DNA from: Rebecca billardiae RCC1528
Taxonomy: Eukaryota > Protista > Haptophyta
Reading direction: 5' to 3'
DNA: 64,000 bases
Assembly: GCA_965240325.2 (NCBI GenBank)
Contig: OZ251230.1
Coordinates: forward strand, 124,001 to 188,000
Each line of letters begins with the position of its first letter. The stretch's first letter is position 1. The translations under genes and the position numbers were made by a program. The notes below the pieces were generated by a model. That model was not told the origin of the DNA, searched no databases, and was given only the letters and a program-made list of their open reading frames with translations. This document shows, in pieces, positions 4,837-43,949 of this stretch.

Positions 4837-6470
4837 AATGAGCAGCATGCACCACCGTCCGGCCGTCTCAGGTCGCTGTCGTCGGCAGCCAGCCGGTGCC
4901 GGGCACGGTGGCGCCGGGCGCTCGTAGCTGAAGGACCGCGATCAAGGATTGATTGCCAAGTCGTCAGCCGACGACTGGGAAGTTGAGCCTGATGCTGCCC
5001 GCTGCCGGTTCGCGGGACGAATGACGAGCAGCCTATGGCCCGTGAACCTGCTTCAGCTCCTAGAACTCTTCCAGACGTGGTGAGGATATCCCTCACGAAC
5101 TCAGCCCTCTCGCGCTGACGCAGCGCGTCTTGCGGCCTGCTGCGTGCCGCGAGCTATCGGACAGCGCGGCCCGCCGGCCGCGGGCCTTGGGCGGCGGGTC
5201 GACGGCTCCAGGCGGCTGCGGAGGACGCGGGGGCCGGTCGCATCCCGGCCAAGGCGTGGGCATCGGCTCGGCGGTTGGGCCCGTCAGCACGCCGGCAAGC
5301 GCTCTGATGCCACTCGAGACTGGCTGCCGAGCTGTCGCGCAACCGTGCCCGGCAAGACACGTGGGTCCGCGCCGAGCGTTCACCGGCCTCCGAACCCGCG
5401 CACGCCTACCAGCCCAGGGCCAGGGCACGCGCCGTCGAGCTGCCCAGCCGCAAGCAGCTCGACAGCCCCGCTGTGTGCGCGCGCGCCTGCCGGTCCGTCT
5501 GCTGCCCGCTCGAGGGCGAGCACGCGGCGCCTCACCTGTCGACCACGACAGCGCGCCTCGCGTGCACACTCTGATGGCGAGGCCCGGGATCTGGGCAGGC
5601 GATGGCACTACCCGCGCCTCCGCCAAGTCTCGGCCTGGCCGAGCCTGCCACAACGAGCAGCATGCACCACAGTCCGGCCGTCTCAGGTCACTGTCGTCGG
5701 CAGCCAGCATTCGCCGGGCGCGATGGCGCCGGACGCTCGCGCGCGATCAAGGATTGATTGCCATCAAGTCGTCAGCCGTCGACTGGGAAGCTGAGCCTGA
5801 TGCTGCCCGCTGCCGGGTCGCGGGACGAATAACGAGCAGCCTACGGTCCGTGAACCTGCGTTAGCTCCTAGAACGCTTTCAGACGTGGTGAGGATCTCCC
5901 TCACGACCTCAGCCCTCTCGCGCTGACGCAGCGCGTCCGCTGCCACTCTACGGCCCTGCTTCCTGCTGCGTGCCGCGAGCTCTCGGACAGCCCGGCCCGC
6001 CGGCCGCGGGCCGTGGGCAGCGGGTCGACGGCTCCAGGCGGCTGCGGAGGACGCGGAGGCCGGTCGCATCCCGGCCAAGGCGTGGGCATCGGCCCGGCGG
6101 CTGAGCCCGCCAGCACGCCGGCAAGCGCTCTGATGCCACTCAGCCTCGAGACTGGCTGCAGAGCTGTCGCGCAACCGTGCCCGGCAAGACACGTGGGTCC
6201 GCGCCGAGCGTTCACCGGCCTCCGAACCCGCGCACGCCTCCCAGACCAGGGCCAGGGCATGCGCCGTCGATCTAACCAGCCGGAAGCAGCTCGACAGCCC
6301 CGCTGTGTGCGCGCGCGCCTGCCGGTATGTCCGCTGCCCGCTCGAGGGCGAGCACGCGGCGCCTCACCTGTCGACCACGACAGCGCGCCTCGCGTGCACA
6401 CTCTGACGGCGAGGCCCGGGATCTGGGCAGGCGATGGCACTACCCGCGCCTCCGCCAAGTCTCGGCCTGG
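4837..6470. repeat. diverged tandem duplication (~813-bp unit) inside the element
   Basis: CAATGAGCAGCATGCACCAC at 4837 recurs as CAACGAGCAGCATGCACCAC at 5650. 5170-5645 is a diverged copy of the inner part of the right TIR. Confidence 0.85.
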
Positions 6471-35307: not shown

Positions 35308-37772
35308 TCAACTTTCCGCCCGGACGATGCCATTGCCACTGAGACTCTGCGTGCTGATGCGGCTGCAGGCAGCATCTGCCGGCTGCACAGCAAGCAGCAC
35401 GTTCAGCACCGCCGCTGCGGCAGCCAGCACGAGGGTGAGCAGCCCAGACGCGAGGGGGCCTCGCCACGCGCGCGGGATGCAGCGCAGCCTCTGCGCTGCA
35501 GGGTGCAACCGACGTTGGAGGCCGGTGCCGACGCTCCGCTGCGCCGCAAGCGTCCACATGTCCAATCCGCGCTCTCGCTCTTGCGCGACTATCTGCAGTT
35601 TCTGGGTGCGCGCGCGCGGGGACAGCACGCTCGACAGGCTGCTCGCCCGGCGGAAGCTGCCCGGTGCTGGCGGTTCGTGCGCGTGAGCGCGCGCCATATT
35701 GCTGGGCTGCACGTGGCTCAGGTCGGGCGTGCGCTTGGGCGCGCTCTGCAGCAGCAGCACCGCGCGCTCGCTGAACCGAGGCAGCGAGCCGCACGCCACC
35801 TCGATCGCGCTCGCCAGCCGGTCGTAGTCCTCGGGCAGCGTGCACGAGCACTGGTCCACAGAGAAGGAGCCGACCAGGTCCGCGTCGAAGCCGGGCAGCA
35901 CCTCCATCTCGATGCGCGTGGCGGCCGTGACGCGCGGGTCTCGCCGGGTGGGAGTCGAGTCTGCGGACGTGCCGTCGGGGTGGTGCGGCTGCTTGCCGCT
36001 GCGGCCCGTCGCCAAGTGCTCACGGCTGCGCTGATCGACCCGGGAGCCCTGCGATGCAACGTCTGGCGGCTGTGCCACGGCGTGCTCGCGGGCCGTCATC
36101 TGGTCGAACACGAAGACCTCCGCGACGCACCTGCGACACGAGGGGCGCGCGGCGGGCCCGGCCGATCCGCGCGCGCCGAGCAGGTGAGCGCACGCACACG
36201 CGAGCGCTGAGCAGCGAGGCGCGCACAGGCCGCTCGCTGCGCCTCCGGCCTCCGTGCGCGCACCACAGCCGCGTGAGGTAGGTAGGGCCCGCGAGGATGA
36301 GCAGGCGCTGACACGACGCCAAGTACACGGGCACAAGCAGCAGCTCGGTCGCAATGTCGTCCTGATTGATGCAGCAGCGGTCTGCGGCGCCGCCGCGGCC
36401 AGCGCGGGTGCGCATGCGTCGGCACGGCGTTTCGCAGAAGCGCGCGCGCGCGCGCGCTTGAGCGGCGTGCGTTCTCAGCGCCGCTGCCGCACCGATCCAG
36501 AGGAGCGGCTCGCGCTCCTTGTTGCGAGCCTTGAACCTGGCCCGCCACTGCTGCAGCGCCTCCCACTTGTACGCCGGGTCGTCATGCCAGCTGGCGGCGG
36601 GGGATGCCCAAGACAGAGCACGCAGTCACGCAGCGCGCGGGCACCACACGCGCGCGTGGTGAGCCCAGGCGTGCGCGAGGCGGTCACGCGCCGGTGCGCG
36701 CGCGGGGCGAGCGTCGCGCGAGGGCGGCGGCGTACGAGTGCGAGACGAACGCGTCGATCTCGTCCAGCTGCACGCTCACGGAGCGCGCGTACCACGCCGG
36801 CTCTTGGCGCTCGGCGGTGTCGAGGCCGGGCTCCTCGCGCGCACTCCCGTCCGCGCGCGCACTCGGCGGACCAACGTCCGCCAGCTCGAAGACGGCACGC
36901 GTGAGCCGGTCCGCAGGGATGGCGCGCAGGCGCGCGCGCGCGCGCGAGATCGTCTGCGTCTCGTCCTGCCCGCTCAGCAGCGCCGCGATGCCTGCGGCCG
37001 CGCGCGTCCCCTCGTCCGCAGCCGTCAGGCACGCGTGCACGCCGCGCCGCACGCGCGGCAGCAGGTGGCCAAGCCCGACGCCAAAGGAGCCCGCTGCCAT
37101 CAGCAGGTTCCAGACGACATCGCCCGTGTGCACAAAACCGTCGATGAGCGCGAAGCCGAGCGCCACGAAGTAGACGAGCCCGAGCGCGGCGCGCATGAGC
37201 ACGACGCCCACCTGCCACCAGACCGCCTCGAGCAGCTGGCGTGAGCCGATGGCGGGCGCGCCGCCGCACGCGCAGCCATAGGACGCCATCAAAGCGCTGC
37301 CGACGCTACCGATCGCCGACAAGCAGGTGAGGCCGAAGAAGAGCCACACGTGGATGTACACCCACGTCAGCTCGTGCCGCTGCCGCGTGCCGCACTCGTA
37401 CAGCGTGCCGTCAGGCGGCGCGCTCGCGAGCGCGTTATGGGTTTGGGCCGCGCCGAACGCGGCGAACAGGGCGCACATGGCGAGCGCACACGCTCGGACG
37501 AGCAGGCTGCTCCGAGGCGGCACCGCCGTGTTGATCAGCAGGATGCTCACCAGGAGGAGGGTTGGCGTCGTGTACCAGCCTGCACTCCCGCGCGGGCTGA
37601 GGACCAGCCACACAACGCCGCCAATGAGGAGGGCGAGGCCTGCGGCGAACGGGAGGATCACGACACGGAGTAGCTGGGCACGCCCCGCCCGGCGAGACAG
37701 CGCAAGCTTTGCGCGGAGCTCCGCGTCCGGGTCTGCCGGCTTCGCCGGCGACACGACCCTGGGCGCGGTCAT
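35308..37772 (-). CDS. multi-pass membrane protein with cytosolic TIR/HET-like domain; exons 37772-36736, 36590-36493, 36381-36264, 36130-35308
   Basis: About 6 TM segments, then after splicing DAFVSHSWHDD..KW..L...PLLWIDRCCINQ...LLLVPVYLASCQRLLILAGPTYLTRLWCVAEVFVF. All three GT-AG introns restore these conserved motifs in frame. Confidence 0.82.
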
Positions 37773-38135
37773 TGCAACCGGTGAACCGGCAACCGCGCGT
37801 GGTAGATGATGATACTGTGCATACCCACCCACCCACATACTAATTGTATCCGATCTCAGGTTTAACCCCATTGATCTCAAATCCTTAACCGCGGCAAATT
37901 GAAAATGAGGGAAGATAGCTATCTCGGTCTCTCGGTTCTACAACTTACTCATTGAAGTACGTATCAGGCTCCATGGGTGTATAATACAGTATTGTATGTT
38001 GCGGGTAAGCTGACCAAGGACTGAACAGGACTCTCCGGCAGCCGGAGAGAGATTGGAGAGCTCCGGCCACGGCCCATCAAAGGCGAGCGCCCGGTGGCGG
38101 CGGCGCGCACGCGGCGGTCGCGCGAGGCGCGGCCG

Positions 38136-40479
38136 ATGGGGAACGCGCACAGCCAGCGGCGGAACGAGTCGGGCCTCGCGCCGCCGCACAAGCTCCCGCC
38201 TCCGCCCGCCTTTGAGAACCTCGGCGTGCTCGGCGCCGGCGCGTACGGCGAGGTGACGTGCCGGCGGCTCGTGTCGACCGGCGAGGTGATCGCGGTCAAG
38301 GCGGTGCCGTTCAACCTGCTGCACCCGGAGCGCCGCGCGAAGGTGCACCGGGAGGCGCGCGTGCTCGAGACGCTGCGCCACCCGCACGTCGTCTCCTTCC
38401 GCGGCGTCTGGGTCCACTCGGGCGCGCTCGGCATCCGCGGGCAGGTGCTGATCGGCATGGAGCTGTGCGCCGGCTCGCTCGGCTCGCTCTTCGAGCACGC
38501 GCCGCGCCGGGCGTACGCGCGGCGGCACGAGGCGATGGCGCAGTGCGCCGACGCGCTCGCGCACTGCCACCGCCGCGGCGTGATGCACCGCGACCTCAAG
38601 CTCGAGAACGTGCTGTACACGTCGACGGCGGGGCACACGTGCGAGGGCTGCGCCACGCTCACGTTCAAGGTGGCGGACTTTGGCGTGGCGGCGCTGATGG
38701 AGCAGACGGGCACGCCGCTCGGGGGCGAGGCGGACGCGTCGGGCGGGCGGGACGGCACGAGCCCCGCCGCCGCCGCCGCCGCCGCGCCGACCGGCCGCGC
38801 GGCCGGCCGCGCGCCGACCGCCCCGAGGCCGTGCGCGCGCGCCCCCAGCGGCAACGCGAGCAGCCTGCAGTCGCTGCCGTATGCGACGATGGCGGGCGGG
38901 CGGCGGACGATGGTGGTGGGCACGCCGCTGTACATGGCGGGCGAGGTGCGCGCGCGCCCTGCGGGCGGTCGGGCGGTCGCTCGCTCCCCGCCGTGCCGCG
39001 CCGCCTCGGCCGCGCCGCTCCCGCGCCGCGCCGCGCGCGCACGCGCACGCGCGCCGCGCGCGTCACGCTCCGCGCGCGCGCGCCTCCGCGCCGCTCACCC
39101 TGCACGCGCAGGTCTTCTGGTCGGACGAGTACGGCCGTGCGTGCGACATCTACTCGCTCGGCTGCGTGTACAGGGAGCTGCTCACGGGCACGCGCATGCA
39201 CGCCTCCGCCAACGTCGTGTACGACCAGCGCGCGCACGAGAGCGGGCTCAAGCCGGTGCACGCGCGGCCGGTGCGCCGCTGCTGGGCGCTGCTGCAGCTG
39301 TACGCGCTGCTCACGCTCGCGGCGTGCGCGGCGCCGGTGGGGCTCGAGTGCCTCGCGCCGACGAGGAGCGCCGCGCGCGCCGACGCGGGAGGCGGCGGGG
39401 CCGCGGGGCAGGGCGGCCCCGACGCCGCGCCGCCGCCGGCGCGCCCGCGCGCGCGGCTCTCCCTCGGCGCGCTCGGCTCGCGCATGCGCGCCTCCGTGCA
39501 GGAGGGGACGGGGCCGGGGGCGGGGGCGGGGGTGGACGCGCACGAGCGCCGACAGCACCGCGCCAGCGTGCACCACGCCAGCGCCGCGCCGCCCGCGCCG
39601 CTGGGGCACGGGGGCGGTGGCACAGCTGCCGCTGCGCTCGGCGGCTCGGCGCGGCCGCCGCCGCCACCGCCCCCCGCCCGGGTGGCCGAGCCGGCCCCGG
39701 CGGGCAGCGGAGGCGGCGGCTCGCCCTGGCTGCGGCCGGTGGCGCCGCTGGCGCCGGTGGTGGGCTCGGTGGTGCTCGTGCTCGCCCTCGTCGGGCTGAC
39801 GGTGCTCGCGCTCGCGCCCGCGCTCGCGGGCGCGCGCGGCGGCACGGCGGGCGGGGCTGCCGGCGACGCGGAGGGCCGTGGGGGCCGGCGCAGCGCGTGG
39901 GGCCGGCGCAGCTCGGCACGCTCGGCCGGCCGGCAGTCCGCCGTGCCTGGCGGCGGCGGCCTCGCGTGGACGCACGCACGGGACACGTCCGCGTGCGCGC
40001 AGGCCAGGCGCGGCGCGGGCGGGACGGCGCGCGCGCTGCTCGGCCTCTCGCTGCGGCTGCTCGCCCTGCTGCTAGCGCTGGGCGCGTGGCTGTGCGAGCC
40101 GACCGCGTGGGCGACGCTCCCGCTCAGCGTGCTGCTGTGCGCGCCCGCGCTCGCCGGCAGCGCGCACGAGCGCGAGGTGCGGCTACTGAACGCGATGATG
40201 GCCGACGCGCCCTCCGAGCGGCCGACGGTGAGCGAGCTCCGCGCGGAGCTGCGCAGGATCCGCGCGCTCCGTGCGCTGCACGCGGGGTGCCTGCTGGGCG
40301 CGGGCGCGGGCGTCGGCGCCCTCGTCCTCCTGCTCCGCCCGCAGCGGGCGGAGTGGCAGCCGGTCGCCTGCGCGTGGGCGCTCTCGGCCGCGGCCGCGCT
40401 CGCGGTCGGCGAGCTCATCCGGCTGGAGCTGCGAAGGAAGGAGGCGCTGCCGGCGGCGCCCGGCTACGTCGATGGCTGA
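38136..40479 (+). CDS. Ser/Thr protein kinase with N-myristoylation motif and multiple hydrophobic segments; exons 38136-38945, 39112-40479
   Basis: MGNAHS; LGAGAYGEV, IAVK, REARVL, HRDLKLEN, DFG, GTPLYMAGE|V, CDIYSLGCVYRELLTG; subdomain XI LLNAMMADAPSERPT about 330 aa later. Confidence 0.88.
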
Positions 40480-40855
40480 GGGGAATGGCGGGAATGCCAC
40501 GCGTCGTACTACTACTAGTGTCTAGTTAGTTTGTGACGCGTGCGTGATGAGTGGTACAGTAGTCGTCCGCTAAGTGGGCGCCGTGCGTGCGGGGGCACGC
40601 CGACGCGCGTCAGTCACCGCCTCTCTGACAGTCGAAATTCGGTGCGCAGCAGGACCCGACTTGGCCGACTGCTTTCTGAATCTGGCTCGGTCATCGTGAA
40701 AAATGGTCACGCTCGATATCATCGAACGTCTATGAGATTTCGCCCAAACTTCGATTCGAATATTTCAAGACCCAGTCATCGTCGTCATCAATAATGACAA
40801 GCTCGGGGCGCTTTTCACCGCCGCCACCTCGGCCGCCCCCCCCCCCCGACTCGCC

Positions 40856-41827
40856 ATGATGCCCGCAACTTCCAATGACCTTCGCACGACGCTGACTGGT
40901 GCGCTCATGGAGACGTCTGATGTCGCCAGCCCCCCCCCTAAGTGGACGACTTTGTGCTACATCGCCACCGGTGCCTGGCTGAAGTCTGGCAACGCAGGCT
41001 CGGATGATGTGCGCCAGCAGATCGTCGATGAGAATGTGAACGTCTCGCTGATGGCAGCGCTGCTGCTCACGATCACGACAGCGTACCTCTTTGCTATCGA
41101 TGAGCTCGACTGGGACTACATCGAGTCGATCTGGGGCGCTTCCTGGGCCATCGCACTGCACGAGCTCCAGCTCGCCCTTGCTCTCACAAGCACGCTCTTC
41201 TTCATCCTCGCCACCTTTGCCGCTGTGTTCCTCATGGTTGTCACTGGCGAAATCTCGTCCAATGCAGAGGCTTCCGCGTACGCGTCCAAGATGGGGCTCC
41301 GGCTCTCCTTTGCCTTTCAGAATCTGATCGCTGGCACCATCATGATCAGCATCATGATGCTGACGCACTCGGTGATATTCTCGCGCAACTTTTACGGCCT
41401 GTACGCGGCCCTCGGACCGGTGATCATCATGATCATCGTGTGGTGCTTCTATATCCTCACACCCATGGTGCACAACATGCTCGTGGTGAAGCGTACCTTT
41501 CAATTGGGAGCAGCGGTGAACCTCAGTGTCGAGGAGATCGGCAAGCACGCACAGGGCTTCTGTACCGCGTTTGGCCTGCACAGTCTCTCCGCCCCTTCGC
41601 TGGTCAAGTACATCTCGACGCAGATCGAGACGGAAAGCGGCACGGGGCCTGGCGCCCCGTCCTACGTCCCGACTGTGCTTTCTGTGCTGACTGAGCAGAT
41701 GGTGGCTGCATTCGTCCAAAAGACGCAAGATGCCTATGTCGCCGAGCAGTTCACGAAGTCTGGCAACGCCCTGGCAAACTCGCTGGTGCAGAAGTTTGGC
41801 GCAAAGCAGCAGCATCGTCGCACTTGA
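40856..41827 (+). CDS. uncharacterised 4-TM membrane protein
   Basis: 323-aa ORF with natural composition and four strong hydrophobic helices (NVSLMAALLLTITTAYLF etc.). Intronless and lower GC. Confidence 0.8.
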   Translation: MMPATSNDLRTTLTGALMETSDVASPPPKWTTLCYIATGAWLKSGNAGSDDVRQQIVDENVNVSLMAALLLTITTAYLFAIDELDWDYIESIWGASWAIALHELQLALALTSTLFFILATFAAVFLMVVTGEISSNAEASAYASKMGLRLSFAFQNLIAGTIMISIMMLTHSVIFSRNFYGLYAALGPVIIMIIVWCFYILTPMVHNMLVVKRTFQLGAAVNLSVEEIGKHAQGFCTAFGLHSLSAPSLVKYISTQIETESGTGPGAPSYVPTVLSVLTEQMVAAFVQKTQDAYVAEQFTKSGNALANSLVQKFGAKQQHRRT

Positions 41828-42236
41828 TCGTGGCACCTGTACTACGTTCGTCGTGACAAGCTACTGCCGCCTGCCGCACTCTTCGCCGCTGATGGCATCA
41901 GCAAGTAGCGTTGAGCAGTATGTGGACTCCCAGAGTAGTGTCGTGGCCCGAGCGCCTACCGTGTCCGCGGCGCCTACCGTGCGCTCTCGCCGCGCACCGC
42001 AACTCGGTGAAGTCTTGGTTCCTGCTCACCAAGTCATTGTACGCCGTTGAGGCTATTCTTGTATCAATTATTCAATTCTCGCGCGATCATTATTTATGCG
42101 CGAGCACACGTCCGCGGGCGGCCGGGGGCCGCCGCTGCCGCCGCCCAATCAGGCGAGCGGGATCAGAAGGGCGGCGGCGGGAAGCTCACGGCCGCCACCT
42201 TGCTGCTTTGCATCACGGTCGACGCGAGCGCTGAGG

Positions 42237-43949
42237 ATGGCGACGGCACTCATCGATGTGGCACGGACGGAGCCCGAGCTGCTCGCCGAGATCATCGCGT
42301 ACGTGGACGAGCCGCTCGAGCTCTCGGGCGCGCTGCGCGTGTCGCGCGCGTTCCGCGAGGCGGGCGCGCGCGCTCTCGAGCTGCGGTGCGCGCGGCGAGG
42401 CGAGGCGCTGCCGACGAGCCTCGGCGCGGGCGCGGCGAGCCTGGCGCACGAGCTGCTGCTGCGCGAGGCGGTGCGCGCTGGGGCGACCCGGTGCTCGAGC
42501 GTCGTCGGCCTCGGCGTCGACTTCTCCGCCTTTGTCGACGCGTGCGGCGCGCTGCTCACGTGCGGCGGCCTCACGTTCAGCGGCGCCTCGCAGGAGGACG
42601 AGAACTGGGGCGGGTACGCGCACGAGCGCGAGGTGGCGCCGCTGCTCGGCCACGGCATGCAGCCGGCGCACGCCCGGCGCTTCGCGTGCGTCCTCGCCCC
42701 GCGGCCCATCGCCTCGCTCCTCCACGCACGCGTGCGGATCGCGCGCGTCGCGTGCGGCGGCTACCACACGCTCGCGCTCGGCGCGGACGGCGCCGTGTAC
42801 TCGCACGGGCACGCGGGCGCGCTGGGCCACCCGGACGGCGCGGACCGGCACAGCCCGAGGCGGATCGAGGCGCTCGCGGGCGTGCGCGCCGTCGGCCTCG
42901 CCGCCGGCGGCGCGAGCAGCGCGGTCATCTGCTGCGCCGGCGGCGTGTACACGTTTGGCGCCGGCGCGGACGGCCAGCTCGGCCACGGCGAGCGCGAGGA
43001 GCAGAAGATTCCGCGGAAGGTCGCGGCGCTGGGCGCGGAGCGGATCGTGGGCGCGGCGCTGGGCGAGGGGCACTCGCTCTTCGTCGGCGTCGACGGCCGC
43101 GTGCACTCGTGCGGCCGAGGGCGCTTCGGCGTGCTCGGCCACGGCGACGTGCGCGCGCGGCTCACGCCCGAGCCGATCGGCGGCCCGCTCGCGGCCGAGC
43201 GCGCGCTGTGCGCGGCCGCGTCGTACGAGCACTCCGTGCTGGTGTGCGCGAGCGGCGTGGCGTACGCGTTCGGCCGGCGCGCGCCCGCGCTGGGGCTCGG
43301 CATGGAGTACTGCCGGCAGCCCGGCGTGCAGTCCGTCCCCGCGCCGATCACCGCCGTCGAGCCCTCTGGCGCGCCGCCGCCGCGCTTTGTGCGCGTCGCG
43401 GCCGCGATCAGTCACACGCTGCTGCTCGACAGCGAGGGCCGCGTGCACTCGTTCGGGCGCGACCAGGCGGGCGTGCTCGGGCACGGCCAGCTGCGGAGCG
43501 GCGTGTTCGGCGGGGGCGACGTGGCGATGCCGCGGCAGATCGAGTGGCTGTGCGACGACGCCGACGGCCCCCGCGCGCCGCGCATCCCCGCCTCGACCGC
43601 GCGCGTCGTCGCGATCGCCGCGGGCGGGCTGTCGACGAGCTGCCTCGTGTGCGACGACCGCAGTGCGTACACGTTTGGCGACGCGATGAGCGGCAGCCTC
43701 GGCCACGGGAAGCCCGTCTCGGCGGCGCGCGTCGACGTGCCCACGCGCGTGGCACGCCTGCCGCCGATGCTGCTCGCGGCGCAGCCCTCGCCGCCGCCGA
43801 ATCCGGCGTGGCACGCACGCTCACCCTCGTCCAGCCTCGCGAGCGAGTCGCCCGGCCCGACCCGGCCAGGCCTCGCCCTTGAGCCCGGCGCCGAGCCCCA
43901 GCCGCGTGGCGGCGGGGCCGATCCTGATTCCAGGCACGAGAGTCGGTGA
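42237..43949 (+). CDS. RCC1-repeat protein with F-box-like N-terminus
   Basis: Repeated VACGGYHTLAL..DGAVYS.G, FGAGADGQLGHG, GRFGVLGHG. N-terminus LIDVARTEPELLAEIIAYV...LRVSRAFR is F-box-like. Confidence 0.88.
   Translation: MATALIDVARTEPELLAEIIAYVDEPLELSGALRVSRAFREAGARALELRCARRGEALPTSLGAGAASLAHELLLREAVRAGATRCSSVVGLGVDFSAFVDACGALLTCGGLTFSGASQEDENWGGYAHEREVAPLLGHGMQPAHARRFACVLAPRPIASLLHARVRIARVACGGYHTLALGADGAVYSHGHAGALGHPDGADRHSPRRIEALAGVRAVGLAAGGASSAVICCAGGVYTFGAGADGQLGHGEREEQKIPRKVAALGAERIVGAALGEGHSLFVGVDGRVHSCGRGRFGVLGHGDVRARLTPEPIGGPLAAERALCAAASYEHSVLVCASGVAYAFGRRAPALGLGMEYCRQPGVQSVPAPITAVEPSGAPPPRFVRVAAAISHTLLLDSEGRVHSFGRDQAGVLGHGQLRSGVFGGGDVAMPRQIEWLCDDADGPRAPRIPASTARVVAIAAGGLSTSCLVCDDRSAYTFGDAMSGSLGHGKPVSAARVDVPTRVARLPPMLLAAQPSPPPNPAWHARSPSSSLASESPGPTRPGLALEPGAEPQPRGGGADPDSRHESR

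Follow-up and report, generated by a model that had tools for sequence, protein, structure and literature searches.

A pavlovophyte protein kinase with a catalytic domain divided by an insert of candidate transmembrane segments

Within a 64,000-nt window of contig OZ251230.1 from the haptophyte Rebecca billardiae RCC1528 (the whole stretch of DNA analysed, to which all coordinates refer), the plus strand carries a gene for a real, unusual variant of the eukaryotic protein kinase. Its product is probably a polytopic, membrane-embedded Ser/Thr kinase with a domain in two pieces, a member of a small family so far confined to pavlovophyte haptophytes. The two-exon gene model yields a protein of 725 aa: exon 1 (38136..38945; 270 codons) extends from the start codon to GTPLYMAGE, intron 1 (38946..39111) is a GT-AG intron of 166 nt (GTGCGC...CGCAG; 88% GC), and exon 2 (39112..40479) closes with a TGA stop codon at 40477-40479. 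Intron 1 was placed where the reading frame changes between the flanking ORFs, with GT and AG at the edges; codon periodicity is absent from it (GC1/2/3 = 0.91/0.91/0.82, against 0.73/0.58/0.985 in exon 1), and the splice join AGE|VFWSDEYG aligns with AAEVFDGGEYG of the homologues without a gap. This intron thus breaks up the catalytic domain only in the DNA; an insertion of 296 in-frame, stop-free codons (39271..40158) is translated and interrupts the domain in the protein between αG and αH. The sequence-only reading had recognized the interruption, and its coordinates hold: subdomain IX (CDIYSLGCVYRELLTG) ends at 39189, the subdomain XI motif VRLLNAMMADAPSERPT starts at 40177, and the frame is open in between. 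The length of ~330 aa that it gave was too long, and the true insertion measures ~296 aa, because TRMHASANVVYDQRAHESGLKPVHARP, the ~27 residues that follow subdomain IX, is conserved and represents the subdomain X/αG region.

In an exhaustive search of representative sequences, the family was found solely in pavlovophyte-type sequences, and the same split recurs there, with the insert retained at four further loci. One homologue is the 670-aa protein KFE25_011285 (P0045) of Diacronema lutheri, whose annotation was produced by BRAKER2 with RNA-seq guidance (PMC8379373); other genomic homologues lie in Pavlovales sp. CCMP2436 (L003) and on a Logan contig (L001). Additionally, a transcript of a relative (P0050; 'mmetsp' Transcript_23824; 633 aa) encodes, in one ORF, the kinase with its insert and subdomain XI followed by both C-terminal hydrophobic helices, and the transcript contig L005 (2111 nt) has a single ORF (73-1974), preceded by a stop in the same frame, and terminates at its 3' side in a run of A. 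Aligned end to end, the 725-aa protein is ~43% identical to P0045 and P0050 (E 1e-148 to 1e-158).

Hydrophobic segments of the insert and the C-terminus

Hydrophobic segments were scored by the mean Kyte-Doolittle (KD) hydropathy of 19 residues, with a cut-off of 1.5-1.6, and by the summed Hessa ΔG. The first candidate, TM1 (LLQLYALLTLAACAAPVGL; 39289..39345), is marginal (KD 1.83, ΔG +2.8) and starts ~6 residues past the αG region, a conserved position at which the homologues have an LPAL motif in common; its counterpart in a model of the D. lutheri homologue (see below) is a helix at 341-365 with a pLDDT of ~66-75. The loop between TM1 and TM2 (39346..39756) consists of 137 aa of low-complexity, Gly/Ala/Pro/Arg-rich sequence, is the most variable part of the insert in both length and sequence (89-149 aa among homologues), and falls below pLDDT 50 in the model. 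TM2 (VVGSVVLVLALVGLTVLALAPALA; 39757..39828) is the strongest transmembrane candidate, with a KD of 2.82 and a ΔG of -2.4 (VVGSVVLVLALVGLTVLAL) that 0 of 2000 shuffles reached, and with a conserved LAL(V/C/M)(G/A)(L/I)T motif. The following Arg-rich loop (39829..40035; ~69 residues by coordinates, 74 if counted from one 19-residue hydropathy window to the next) contains 12 K+R versus 3 D+E, and that of the genomic homologues is likewise K/R-rich (8-14 K+R versus 1-3 D+E), whereas in the MMETSP/L004 sequence it is balanced, with 6 of each. By the positive-inside rule, this K/R excess would fit a cytosolic location of the TM2-TM3 loop.

TM3 (LLGLSLRLLALLLALGAWL; 40036..40092) is again strong (KD 2.12, ΔG -0.5) and forms a tight hairpin with TM4 (WATLPLSVLLCAPALAGSA; 40108..40164), which is marginal in hydropathy and continues straight into αH. 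Specifically, TM4 of the 725-aa protein has no 19-residue window at KD 1.5-1.6, whereas its homologue counterparts reach 1.55-1.65; the motif AWA(T/C)LP is conserved, the TM3-TM4 loop of the homologues spans 2-8 aa without K or R, and residues 542-574 of the homologue model, which run from TM4 into αH, form one continuous helix that climbs to pLDDT 90. The two further hydrophobic stretches that the sequence-only reading had placed after the kinase domain were also found, namely TM5 (LHAGCLLGAGAGVGALVLL; 40276..40332; KD 1.88), which is conserved in position, and TM6 (VACAWALSAAAALAVGELI; 40363..40419; KD 1.87), next to which lies a conserved basic tail, RL.LR, within the basic C-terminal tail and stop codon (40420..40479). 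No hydrophobic segment lies N-terminal to the kinase, so that the helices fall inside and after the catalytic domain.

Taken over the 725-aa protein, five 19-residue windows attain KD 1.6 or more; only TM2 and TM3 have Hessa sums at or below zero, the sums of TM1, TM4, TM5 and TM6 being positive, and in L001 every segment is marginal. When the residues of each insert were shuffled, as many segments as observed turned up in 6 of 2000 cases for the 725-aa protein, in 1 of 2000 for P0045 and in 0 of 2000 for P0050, the test being weaker in L001 (52/2000) and L003 (78/2000). The four hydrophobic segments of the insert thus recur at conserved positions and are more clustered than composition alone would make them, and homologues share the hydrophobic stretches in the data at hand.

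A translated insert with such stretches need not cross the membrane. It could instead be a soluble or peripheral Ala/Leu-rich module, a set of monotopic hairpins of the kind that sit on lipid droplets or the ER surface, or low-complexity sequence driven by GC content, comparable to the hydrophilic inserts of Plasmodium kinases. The positive Hessa sums, which extend to all segments of L001, agree with such a reading, as do the shuffles of L001 and L003 that match the observed maxima fairly often and the pLDDT of only 57-75 for the helices in the model; the tight TM3/TM4 and TM5/TM6 hairpins, with turns of 1-10 residues, would suit monotopic insertion too, and large inserts in the catalytic domain are known in other kinases (PMC526369). 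However, the ΔG of TM2 is -2.4 in both the 725-aa and the MMETSP protein, that of TM3 is -0.5 and -0.6, and the first and last segments of P0045 score about -1 to -1.4, values that are typical of true spans. Moreover, stretches of 19-33 uncharged residues stand at the same alignment positions, with conserved motifs, in five divergent sequences; the MMETSP sequence, which is lower in GC, has more canonical segments with Phe and Ile; and most members have K/R-rich loops next to the segments. We therefore regard a module that does not span the membrane as unlikely and favor the polytopic kinase.

Extreme GC content favors Ala/Leu/Gly-rich stretches such as these. A fifth hydrophobic stretch occurs within the TM1-TM2 loop of the MMETSP protein and, if membrane-spanning, would break the even-number rule. 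Neither the insert nor the C-terminal parts had a significant match in Pfam (best, Tmemb_14 at E 0.05), and an ESM Atlas look-alike search with the insert and C-terminus gave no usable match. An internal duplication, either with TM1 as a vestigial αH or with the TM3/TM4 hairpin related to TM5/TM6, was rejected at hhalign probabilities of at most 2%.

The kinase core and the segment that follows the insert

Exon 1 holds the N-lobe GAGAYG, IAVK, the αC Glu (HREARVLE), HRDLKLEN, ADFG and GTPLYMAGE, together with a low-complexity insert of ~75 aa in the activation loop. Its product matches positions 2-152 of the Pfam Pkinase profile (PF00069) at 95.6 bits (cut-off 31.7), and the start of exon 2 matches positions 171-201; for P0045 the match amounts to 126.4 bits over 2 stretches. 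The αEF/αF part (subdomain IX, DIYSLGCVYRELLTG) and the conserved αG region up to KPVHARP (39112..39270) are kept in all homologues, and their counterpart in the homologue model has a pLDDT of 85-95. Clear affiliation to a kinase group was not found: identity is ~25-30% to PknB, CaMKII, Aurora-A, PLK1 and Wee1/Myt1, the best structural matches, and to GCN2, the best sequence match in the PDB. The Gly-rich loop, the VAIK Lys, the αC Glu, HRDLKxxN and DFG are conserved in P0045 and P0050, and with its catalytic motifs intact the kinase is apparently active. The change of APE to AGE reported by the sequence-only reading is real, and homologues have AAE or ANE, so that the Glu of subdomain VIII is retained and the Pro lost; its presumed salt-bridge partner, the Arg of an Arg-Pro located after the insert, is invariant in the five aligned family sequences. 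The N-terminal myristoylation motif proposed in that reading is also borne out by the PROSITE pattern M-G-{EDRKHPFYW}-x-x-[STAGCN]-{P}, to which the MGNAHS start conforms together with the N-termini of the D. lutheri and MMETSP homologues; MGNAHSQ, MGNRGSR and MGAAQSR were matched by regular expression, and MGASESR of L001 by eye.

The invariant Arg-Pro belongs to the putative αH/αI segment (subdomain XI, HEREVRLLNAMMADAPSERPTVSELRAELRRIRALRAL; 40165..40278), which is among the best-conserved parts of the family proteins. In hhalign comparisons against a profile of 27 kinases, the post-insert slice fell on the L..dP..R columns with a probability of 75-77% (E 1.9-2.5e-5), all other slices staying at or below 0.1%, and MAFFT by itself placed generic αH/αI fragments on this segment. 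As judged by this profile alignment, the post-insert segment is homologous to kinase αH/αI. To model its packing, the D. lutheri homologue was submitted to AlphaFold2 with alignment A10, which excludes generic kinase rows past αF and was checked row by row. The core of the model has a pLDDT of 85-96 and residues 561-600 of ~90, against 57-75 for the TM helices, and VIA-align superposes 245-262 residues on kinase chains of 259-269 residues (Z 25-26, rmsd 2.4-3.1 Å), the matches spanning model residues 19-600 and their ranges reaching 596-600. The model thus predicts that the αH/αI segment rejoins the C-lobe after the insert, at a pLDDT of ~90, the point on which the sequence-only reading had wanted its helix H/XI checked. 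A single-sequence AlphaFold2 run of P0045 was discarded (pLDDT 41), since even the kinase core came out as helices, and so were MAFFT alignments A4-A8 and part of A9, in which generic kinase tails were pulled onto TM1 or the post-insert segment.

The protein might also be a pseudokinase, or the product of a decaying lineage-specific gene, with a domain that no longer reassembles and a post-insert motif that is a relic. Such decay would account for the lost Pro of APE (AGE/AAE/ANE), for the large disordered activation-loop insert, and for the facts that the best sequence matches to solved kinases end at αF and that Pfam is blind to the post-insert segment. Nevertheless, GxGxxG, the VAIK Lys, the αC Glu, HRDLKxxN, DFG, the APE Glu, the IX Asp and the XI Arg are all kept in three lineages that are ~43% identical, coding periodicity and intact ORFs are found at all loci, and the well-conserved post-insert segment occupies its canonical place in the homologue model with high confidence. 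A decayed kinase is accordingly very improbable, and a two-piece kinase that reassembles is preferred.

Coding character of the insert

The insert is 84% GC, and 19% of its mononucleotide shuffles remain open, so that the open frame by itself is weak evidence of coding. Codon periodicity is stronger evidence: GC1/2/3 of the insert is 0.85/0.73/0.95, with a GC3 like that of the flanking exons, and the in-frame GC3 is high across every subsegment. Periodicity is lowest at 39541-39720, within the low-complexity TM1-TM2 loop, and because it is weak there a small in-frame intron is possible in that interval. At all four genomic loci the insert is open and of a length divisible by 3 (675, 867, 663 and 888 nt in D. 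lutheri, L003, L001 and Rebecca, respectively); composition alone would leave the frame open with a probability, in the same order, of 0.49, 0.07, 0.03 and 0.19, each to be multiplied by 1/3 for frame, which gives a joint chance of ~1e-6 if the loci are assumed to be independent. Judged by codon usage and conservation, the insert is exonic, coding and a genuine part of the predicted protein.

That it is instead an unrecognized intron or other non-coding DNA, open only as stops are rare at 84% GC and absent from a contiguous mature kinase, could draw on the 19% of shuffles that stay open, on the GC-rich GT-AG intron that the gene already has, and on a donor-like GTGCGC at ~39269 that could in principle be joined in frame to an AG at 40176, but it is largely refuted and the least probable reading of all, given an in-frame GC3 of 0.95 in every subsegment where a true intron has no periodicity, the open, frame-preserving inserts at 4/4 genomic loci, protein motifs conserved up to the putative acceptor (AWATLP...AAH.REV), and the relative's MMETSP transcript, from which the insert has not been spliced out. 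GC content drops to 58% directly downstream of the kinase stop codon. The upstream gene stands head-to-head with the kinase gene, and tblastn searches for synteny of this gene or the downstream genes in L001-L003 gave no match at E ≤1e-4.

Proposed architecture and relation to known kinases

The favored reading, a membrane-embedded kinase in two pieces, would assemble as follows. The first catalytic piece would run from the N-lobe through αG, and the second would comprise αH/αI; the ~220-300 residues between them would form TM1, the long variable loop, TM2, the Arg-rich loop and the tight TM3/TM4 hairpin, with a second hairpin, TM5/TM6, after αI. Because the insert has an even number of spans, both pieces would lie on the same, cytosolic, face and could pack as a normal kinase fold. 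The C-lobe would be fixed to the membrane at three points (αG-TM1, TM4-αH and αI-TM5) and the N-lobe held by myristate, and the kinase, with its orientation on the bilayer rigidly set, would most likely phosphorylate membrane-proximal substrates. Membrane insertion itself, the topology and orientation of the protein, and any regulatory coupling are inferences here. Thus, of the topology first suggested, in which an even number of TM helices loops out of the C-lobe, an exonic insert between subdomains X and XI stands, whereas its passage through the membrane is a prediction to which two of the four segments contribute marginally by Hessa sums. The accompanying proposal, control of kinase assembly by a luminal or extracellular loop, is unsupported, because the TM1-TM2 loop shows the lowest conservation, is low in complexity and falls below pLDDT 50 in the model; conservation lies in the helices and at the TM4-αH junction, and these helices, rather than the variable loop, may serve as an anchor, a partner-binding element or a sensor.

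A more speculative extension, which we think improbable, is that the catalytic domain incorporates the six-helix module as an allosteric input, making the protein an 'inside-out' receptor kinase with a core that is complete only after membrane insertion. With TM4 continuous with αH and TM1 only a few residues past αG, shifts of the bundle caused by lipid, membrane potential or tension, or a partner membrane protein might reshape the αG/αH docking surface or gate assembly of the C-lobe.

The kinase shares with conventional ePKs (PF00069) all catalytic motifs and the bilobal fold, and the homologue model superposes on them with αH/αI included (Z 25-26); it differs in having lost the APE Pro and in a non-contiguous domain, with ~296 residues and four hydrophobic helices in the αG-αH loop, where a conventional ePK has an unbroken domain of ~250-300 residues. 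Receptor and receptor-like kinases (RTKs, plant RLKs, TGF-β receptors, IRE1/PERK) are likewise integrated in the membrane with a cytosolic kinase domain, as is predicted here. Their TM helices are N-terminal, outside the catalytic domain, and they possess a folded extracellular or luminal sensor domain, whereas the helices of the pavlovophyte kinase lie within and after the domain and its sole exoplasmic candidate is the variable low-complexity loop. To our knowledge, TM helices of kinases always lie outside the catalytic domain. Src-family kinases and CDPKs are N-myristoylated, and Myt1 has a membrane-association motif; the pavlovophyte kinase resembles these lipid- or tail-anchored kinases in its MGxxxS motif and its predicted place at the membrane surface, and adds six predicted helices, four of which split the catalytic domain. 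With the kinases that carry large inserts, namely the PDGFR/VEGFR type with its kinase-insert domain and the ePKs and FIKKs of Plasmodium falciparum, it has in common a lineage-specific, partly low-complexity insertion in a surface loop. In these kinases the insert is hydrophilic, charged or polar and lies in or near the N-lobe or between the lobes, in contrast to the conserved hydrophobic helices in the αG-αH loop of the C-lobe described here; the inserts of P. falciparum kinases map to N-lobe hinge regions, and TM helices are reported only N-terminal to the domain (PMC526369). A word-based literature search, which proves nothing in itself, turned up no description of another kinase with membrane helices splitting its catalytic domain, and for TM helices inside kinase domains or the haptophyte kinome it returned no relevant paper save that on the Plasmodium kinome and its hydrophilic inserts.

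Few folds have been studied as thoroughly as the protein kinase domain. If the proposed architecture is correct, a C-lobe can receive its final segment after the chain has crossed the membrane four times, a bilayer can fix the orientation of a kinase rigidly in a manner not described before, and the αG/αH docking surface is mechanically coupled to a membrane module. It would also bear on co-translational folding and insertion, namely on how a cytosolic domain waits for its last two helices, and would provide a lineage-specific signalling component for pavlovophyte haptophytes, a group in which signalling is essentially unstudied. On the practical side, gene predictors and domain scanners shorten such proteins: the CCMP2436 gene model cuts the kinase short, and Pfam covers only the first two thirds of the kinase domain.

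Coding status of the insert

The GC-rich window (59-82% in 2-kb bins, 70-80% in most) carries eukaryotic, intron-containing genes, and the N-terminal and C-terminal parts of its kinase lie in different reading frames linked across a 166-nt GT-AG intron. Exon 1 (38136-38945, + strand) runs from MGNAHS... to ...GTPLYMAGE, the intron (38946-39111, +) reads GTGCGC...CGCAG, and exon 2 (39112-40479, +) extends from VFWSDEYGRACDIYSLG... through the stop. The predicted 725-aa product aligns end to end with KFE25_011285 of Diacronema lutheri (P0045, 670 aa; 43% identity, E 2.5e-148) and with an MMETSP homologue (P0050, 633 aa; 43% identity, E 1.5e-158). The kinase is likely active, as it retains every catalytic motif in intact form and all of them are conserved (GAGAYG, IAVK, the alphaC Glu, HRDLKLEN, DFG, the Glu of A-G-E, DIYSLG and the Arg-Pro of subdomain XI). 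Between DFG and GTPLYMAGE (38690-38900) lies an activation-segment insert of ~75 aa, low in complexity and Ala/Gly/Pro/Arg-rich; its MMETSP counterpart is shorter, and that of the D. lutheri homologue is modelled as disordered.

The sequence-only reading placed the end of subdomain IX at 39189 and the start of the post-insert motif at 40177, both of which hold, with an insert of ~330 aa between them. The insert is real but smaller: because the ~27 residues past subdomain IX are conserved alphaG-region sequence, the true insertion comprises 296 codons (39271-40158). At 84% GC, an open frame is by itself weak evidence of coding, as 19% of shuffled inserts also stay open, and the starting hypothesis was that the insert is a second intron. 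This was overturned by three independent lines of evidence: codon periodicity, comparison among homologues and a transcript. GC at codon positions 1/2/3 is 0.85/0.73/0.95 in the insert and 0.73/0.58/0.985 in exon 1, against 0.91/0.91/0.82 in the genuine intron (38946-39111), and in-frame GC3 within the insert is at least 0.85 in all 120-nt windows. Codon periodicity is lowest at 39541-39720, and a small in-frame intron may lie within the low-complexity loop of the insert. The homologues keep the same split, with inserts of 663 nt in a Logan contig (L001), 675 nt in D. lutheri (L002) and 867 nt in Pavlovales sp. CCMP2436 (L003), as compared with 888 nt in the window; all four are open, divisible by three in length and ordered GC3 > GC1 > GC2. 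Under a non-coding model with the loci taken as independent, four open in-frame inserts would have a joint chance of roughly 1e-6. Introns occupy different positions among species, and none falls inside the insert.

With regard to transcripts, a cluster look-up grouped the fragment P0047 with P0050, a 633-aa ORF labelled mmetsp Transcript_23824. In the corresponding 2111-nt contig (L005, Ga0186151_101818), a leader of 72 nt that contains an in-frame stop precedes a single unbroken ORF (73-1974), and the 3' end lies in an A-run. From its N-terminus the encoded protein has the myristoylation motif and the kinase, then the insert, which carries hydrophobic segments, then subdomain XI and finally the two C-terminal hydrophobic segments. 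The insert is kept in this relative's transcript, and in the window gene it is probably exonic too. L005 is a clean copy of the transcript seen in JGI contig Ga0186147_102406 (L004), where 10-N scaffold gaps at 396-405 and 990-999 shift the frame and leave the ORF in three pieces. The D. lutheri gene model derives from an RNA-seq-guided BRAKER2 annotation (PMC8379373). The CCMP2436 homologue adjoins an N gap of ~5 kb (L003 700-5700) and shows a 2-nt frame discrepancy at 5757-5760, between ...CVYRELLTS and TRLFDSRRV...; its annotated 333-aa model (P0048) is a truncated artefact whose start lies within the insert.

Predicted completion of the C-lobe

Pfam and phmmer kinase alignments reach alphaF only and do not cover the post-insert segment. 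When a five-sequence alignment of this segment was compared with a 27-kinase alignment by hhalign, VRLLNAMMADAPSERPTVSELRAEL fell onto the L..dP..R columns (probability 75%, E 2.5e-5). As a control, the family alignment was cut into alphaG/TM1, TM2, TM3-4, alphaH/I and TM5-6 slices, of which the alphaH/I slice alone matched the kinase profile (77%, E 1.9e-5), the remaining slices scoring 0.1% or less. Since no slice resembled another in hhalign, internal duplication is not detectable by this comparison. Likewise, MAFFT placed isolated alphaH/I fragments from generic kinases onto the post-insert segment unaided.

AlphaFold2 reached a pLDDT of 41 for P0045 from the single sequence. It was then given an alignment (A10) of family pieces and 22 generic kinases, with row placement checked; the generic kinases were cut after alphaF, so the network received no cue as to what follows the insert. 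The resulting model (pTM 0.61) has pLDDT 85-96 in the kinase core (P0045 20-190 and 272-340), about 90 in the post-insert segment (561-600), 57-75 in the hydrophobic helices and below 50 in the TM1-TM2 loop. VIA-align superposed it on the complete kinase domains of PknB, CaMKII, PLK1, Aurora-A and Wee1 (Z 25-26, rmsd 2.4-3.1 A), aligning 245-262 residues of chains of 259-269 residues, over a model range of 19 to 596-600 and chain ranges reaching the domain end. Because the part of the model ahead of the insert contributes just ~238 confident residues, the superposition must include alphaH/alphaI. Subdomain XI is therefore predicted to pack back on the C-lobe, as a fold modelled on a homologue 43% identical to the window protein. 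In the model, TM1 starts a few residues past the alphaG region, TM4 and alphaH form a single continuous helix (542-574), and TM5 directly follows alphaI.

Hydrophobic segments and putative topology

Family members share Kyte-Doolittle peaks (19-residue) of ~1.6 or more at the same alignment positions, with four peaks inside the insert and two past alphaI. Their hydrophobic residues also cluster more than in shuffles of matched composition, of which 6/2000 attained the observed segment count for the window protein, 1/2000 for P0045, 0/2000 for P0050, 52/2000 for L001 and 78/2000 for L003. TM2 of the window and MMETSP proteins has a clearly favourable Hessa value (-2.4), TM3 is at about -0.5, and P0045 gives about -1 for TM1 and about -1.4 for its last segment; the other segments are marginal on this scale, and those of L001 are all positive. 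The insert segments are putative transmembrane helices, and segment 4 of the window protein falls below the Kyte-Doolittle threshold (homologue counterparts, 1.55-1.65). Motifs are conserved in TM2, LAL(V/C/M)(G/A)(L/I)T, and TM4, AWA(T/C)LP, and in the lower-GC MMETSP sequence the segments are more canonical, with Phe/Ile.

Turns of 1-10 residues that lack K/R join TM3 to TM4 and TM5 to TM6, indicating hairpins. In the four genomic members, K/R residues predominate in the TM2-TM3 loop (8-14 K+R vs 1-3 D+E); the loop of the MMETSP sequence is charge-balanced, and the C-tail is basic for the most part. These loop features fit a predicted topology of kinase (cytosolic)-TM1-exoplasmic loop-TM2-cytosolic loop-TM3/TM4-alphaH/I (cytosolic)-TM5/TM6-cytosolic tail, self-consistent given a myristoylated cytosolic N-terminus. 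The MMETSP homologue alone has an extra hydrophobic stretch, IMVDLFAIVLGALSPALVA, in its TM1-TM2 loop (P0050 residues ~385-405); if this spanned the membrane, the span count of that insert would be odd.

The best-supported interpretation is that the window gene encodes a membrane-embedded Ser/Thr kinase whose C-lobe would be completed after four membrane passes, the kinase being attached to the bilayer through three junctions and an N-terminal lipid. The earlier proposal of TM helices looping out of the C-lobe gains support from conservation of the insert, the MMETSP transcript, the alphaH/I match and the predicted P0045 structure. Its suggestion that an exoplasmic loop controls kinase assembly is unsupported, because no part of the protein is less conserved, more variable or more disordered than the TM1-TM2 loop. 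Any regulation of the kinase by its membrane module would more plausibly involve the conserved helices and the rigid junction of TM4 with alphaH.

Known kinases, distribution and neighbouring genes

Receptor kinases have their TM helices outside the catalytic domain, whereas here they are predicted to lie inside it. The kinase-insert domain of PDGFR/VEGFR differs in being hydrophilic and elsewhere in the catalytic domain; likewise, the large catalytic-domain inserts of Plasmodium ePKs and FIKKs are hydrophilic and at other sites (PMC526369). Word-based literature searching, which cannot prove absence, found no description of TM helices within a kinase domain.

The relatives found are all pavlovophytes: D. 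lutheri, whose genome is 73% GC (PMC8379373), Pavlovales sp. CCMP2436 and an MMETSP transcriptome. From 1.84 billion cluster representatives, a search with a C-terminal-half profile retrieved five proteins in all, four of them clearly of the split-kinase family; a word-index protein search matched P0045 alone, and an Atlas search gave no match to the family. The neighbouring genes show no synteny among the kinase loci. In the window, a multi-pass membrane protein gene (35308-37880, - strand) lies head-to-head with the kinase, and tblastn (E 1e-4 or better) detected no homologue of it beside the L001-L003 kinase genes, indicating no conserved pairing at this sensitivity. In L001 the kinase gene is followed downstream by one of the peroxidase family (PF00141; 2703-3689), unrelated to the window's neighbours. 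Past the kinase stop codon, GC falls sharply from ~80% to 58-64% (40480-42000), a stretch that holds a 323-aa ORF with several hydrophobic stretches (40856-41827, +), and is followed by a long ORF (42096-43949, +) with repeated, RCC1-type-like G(H)G...(V/S)..G motifs.
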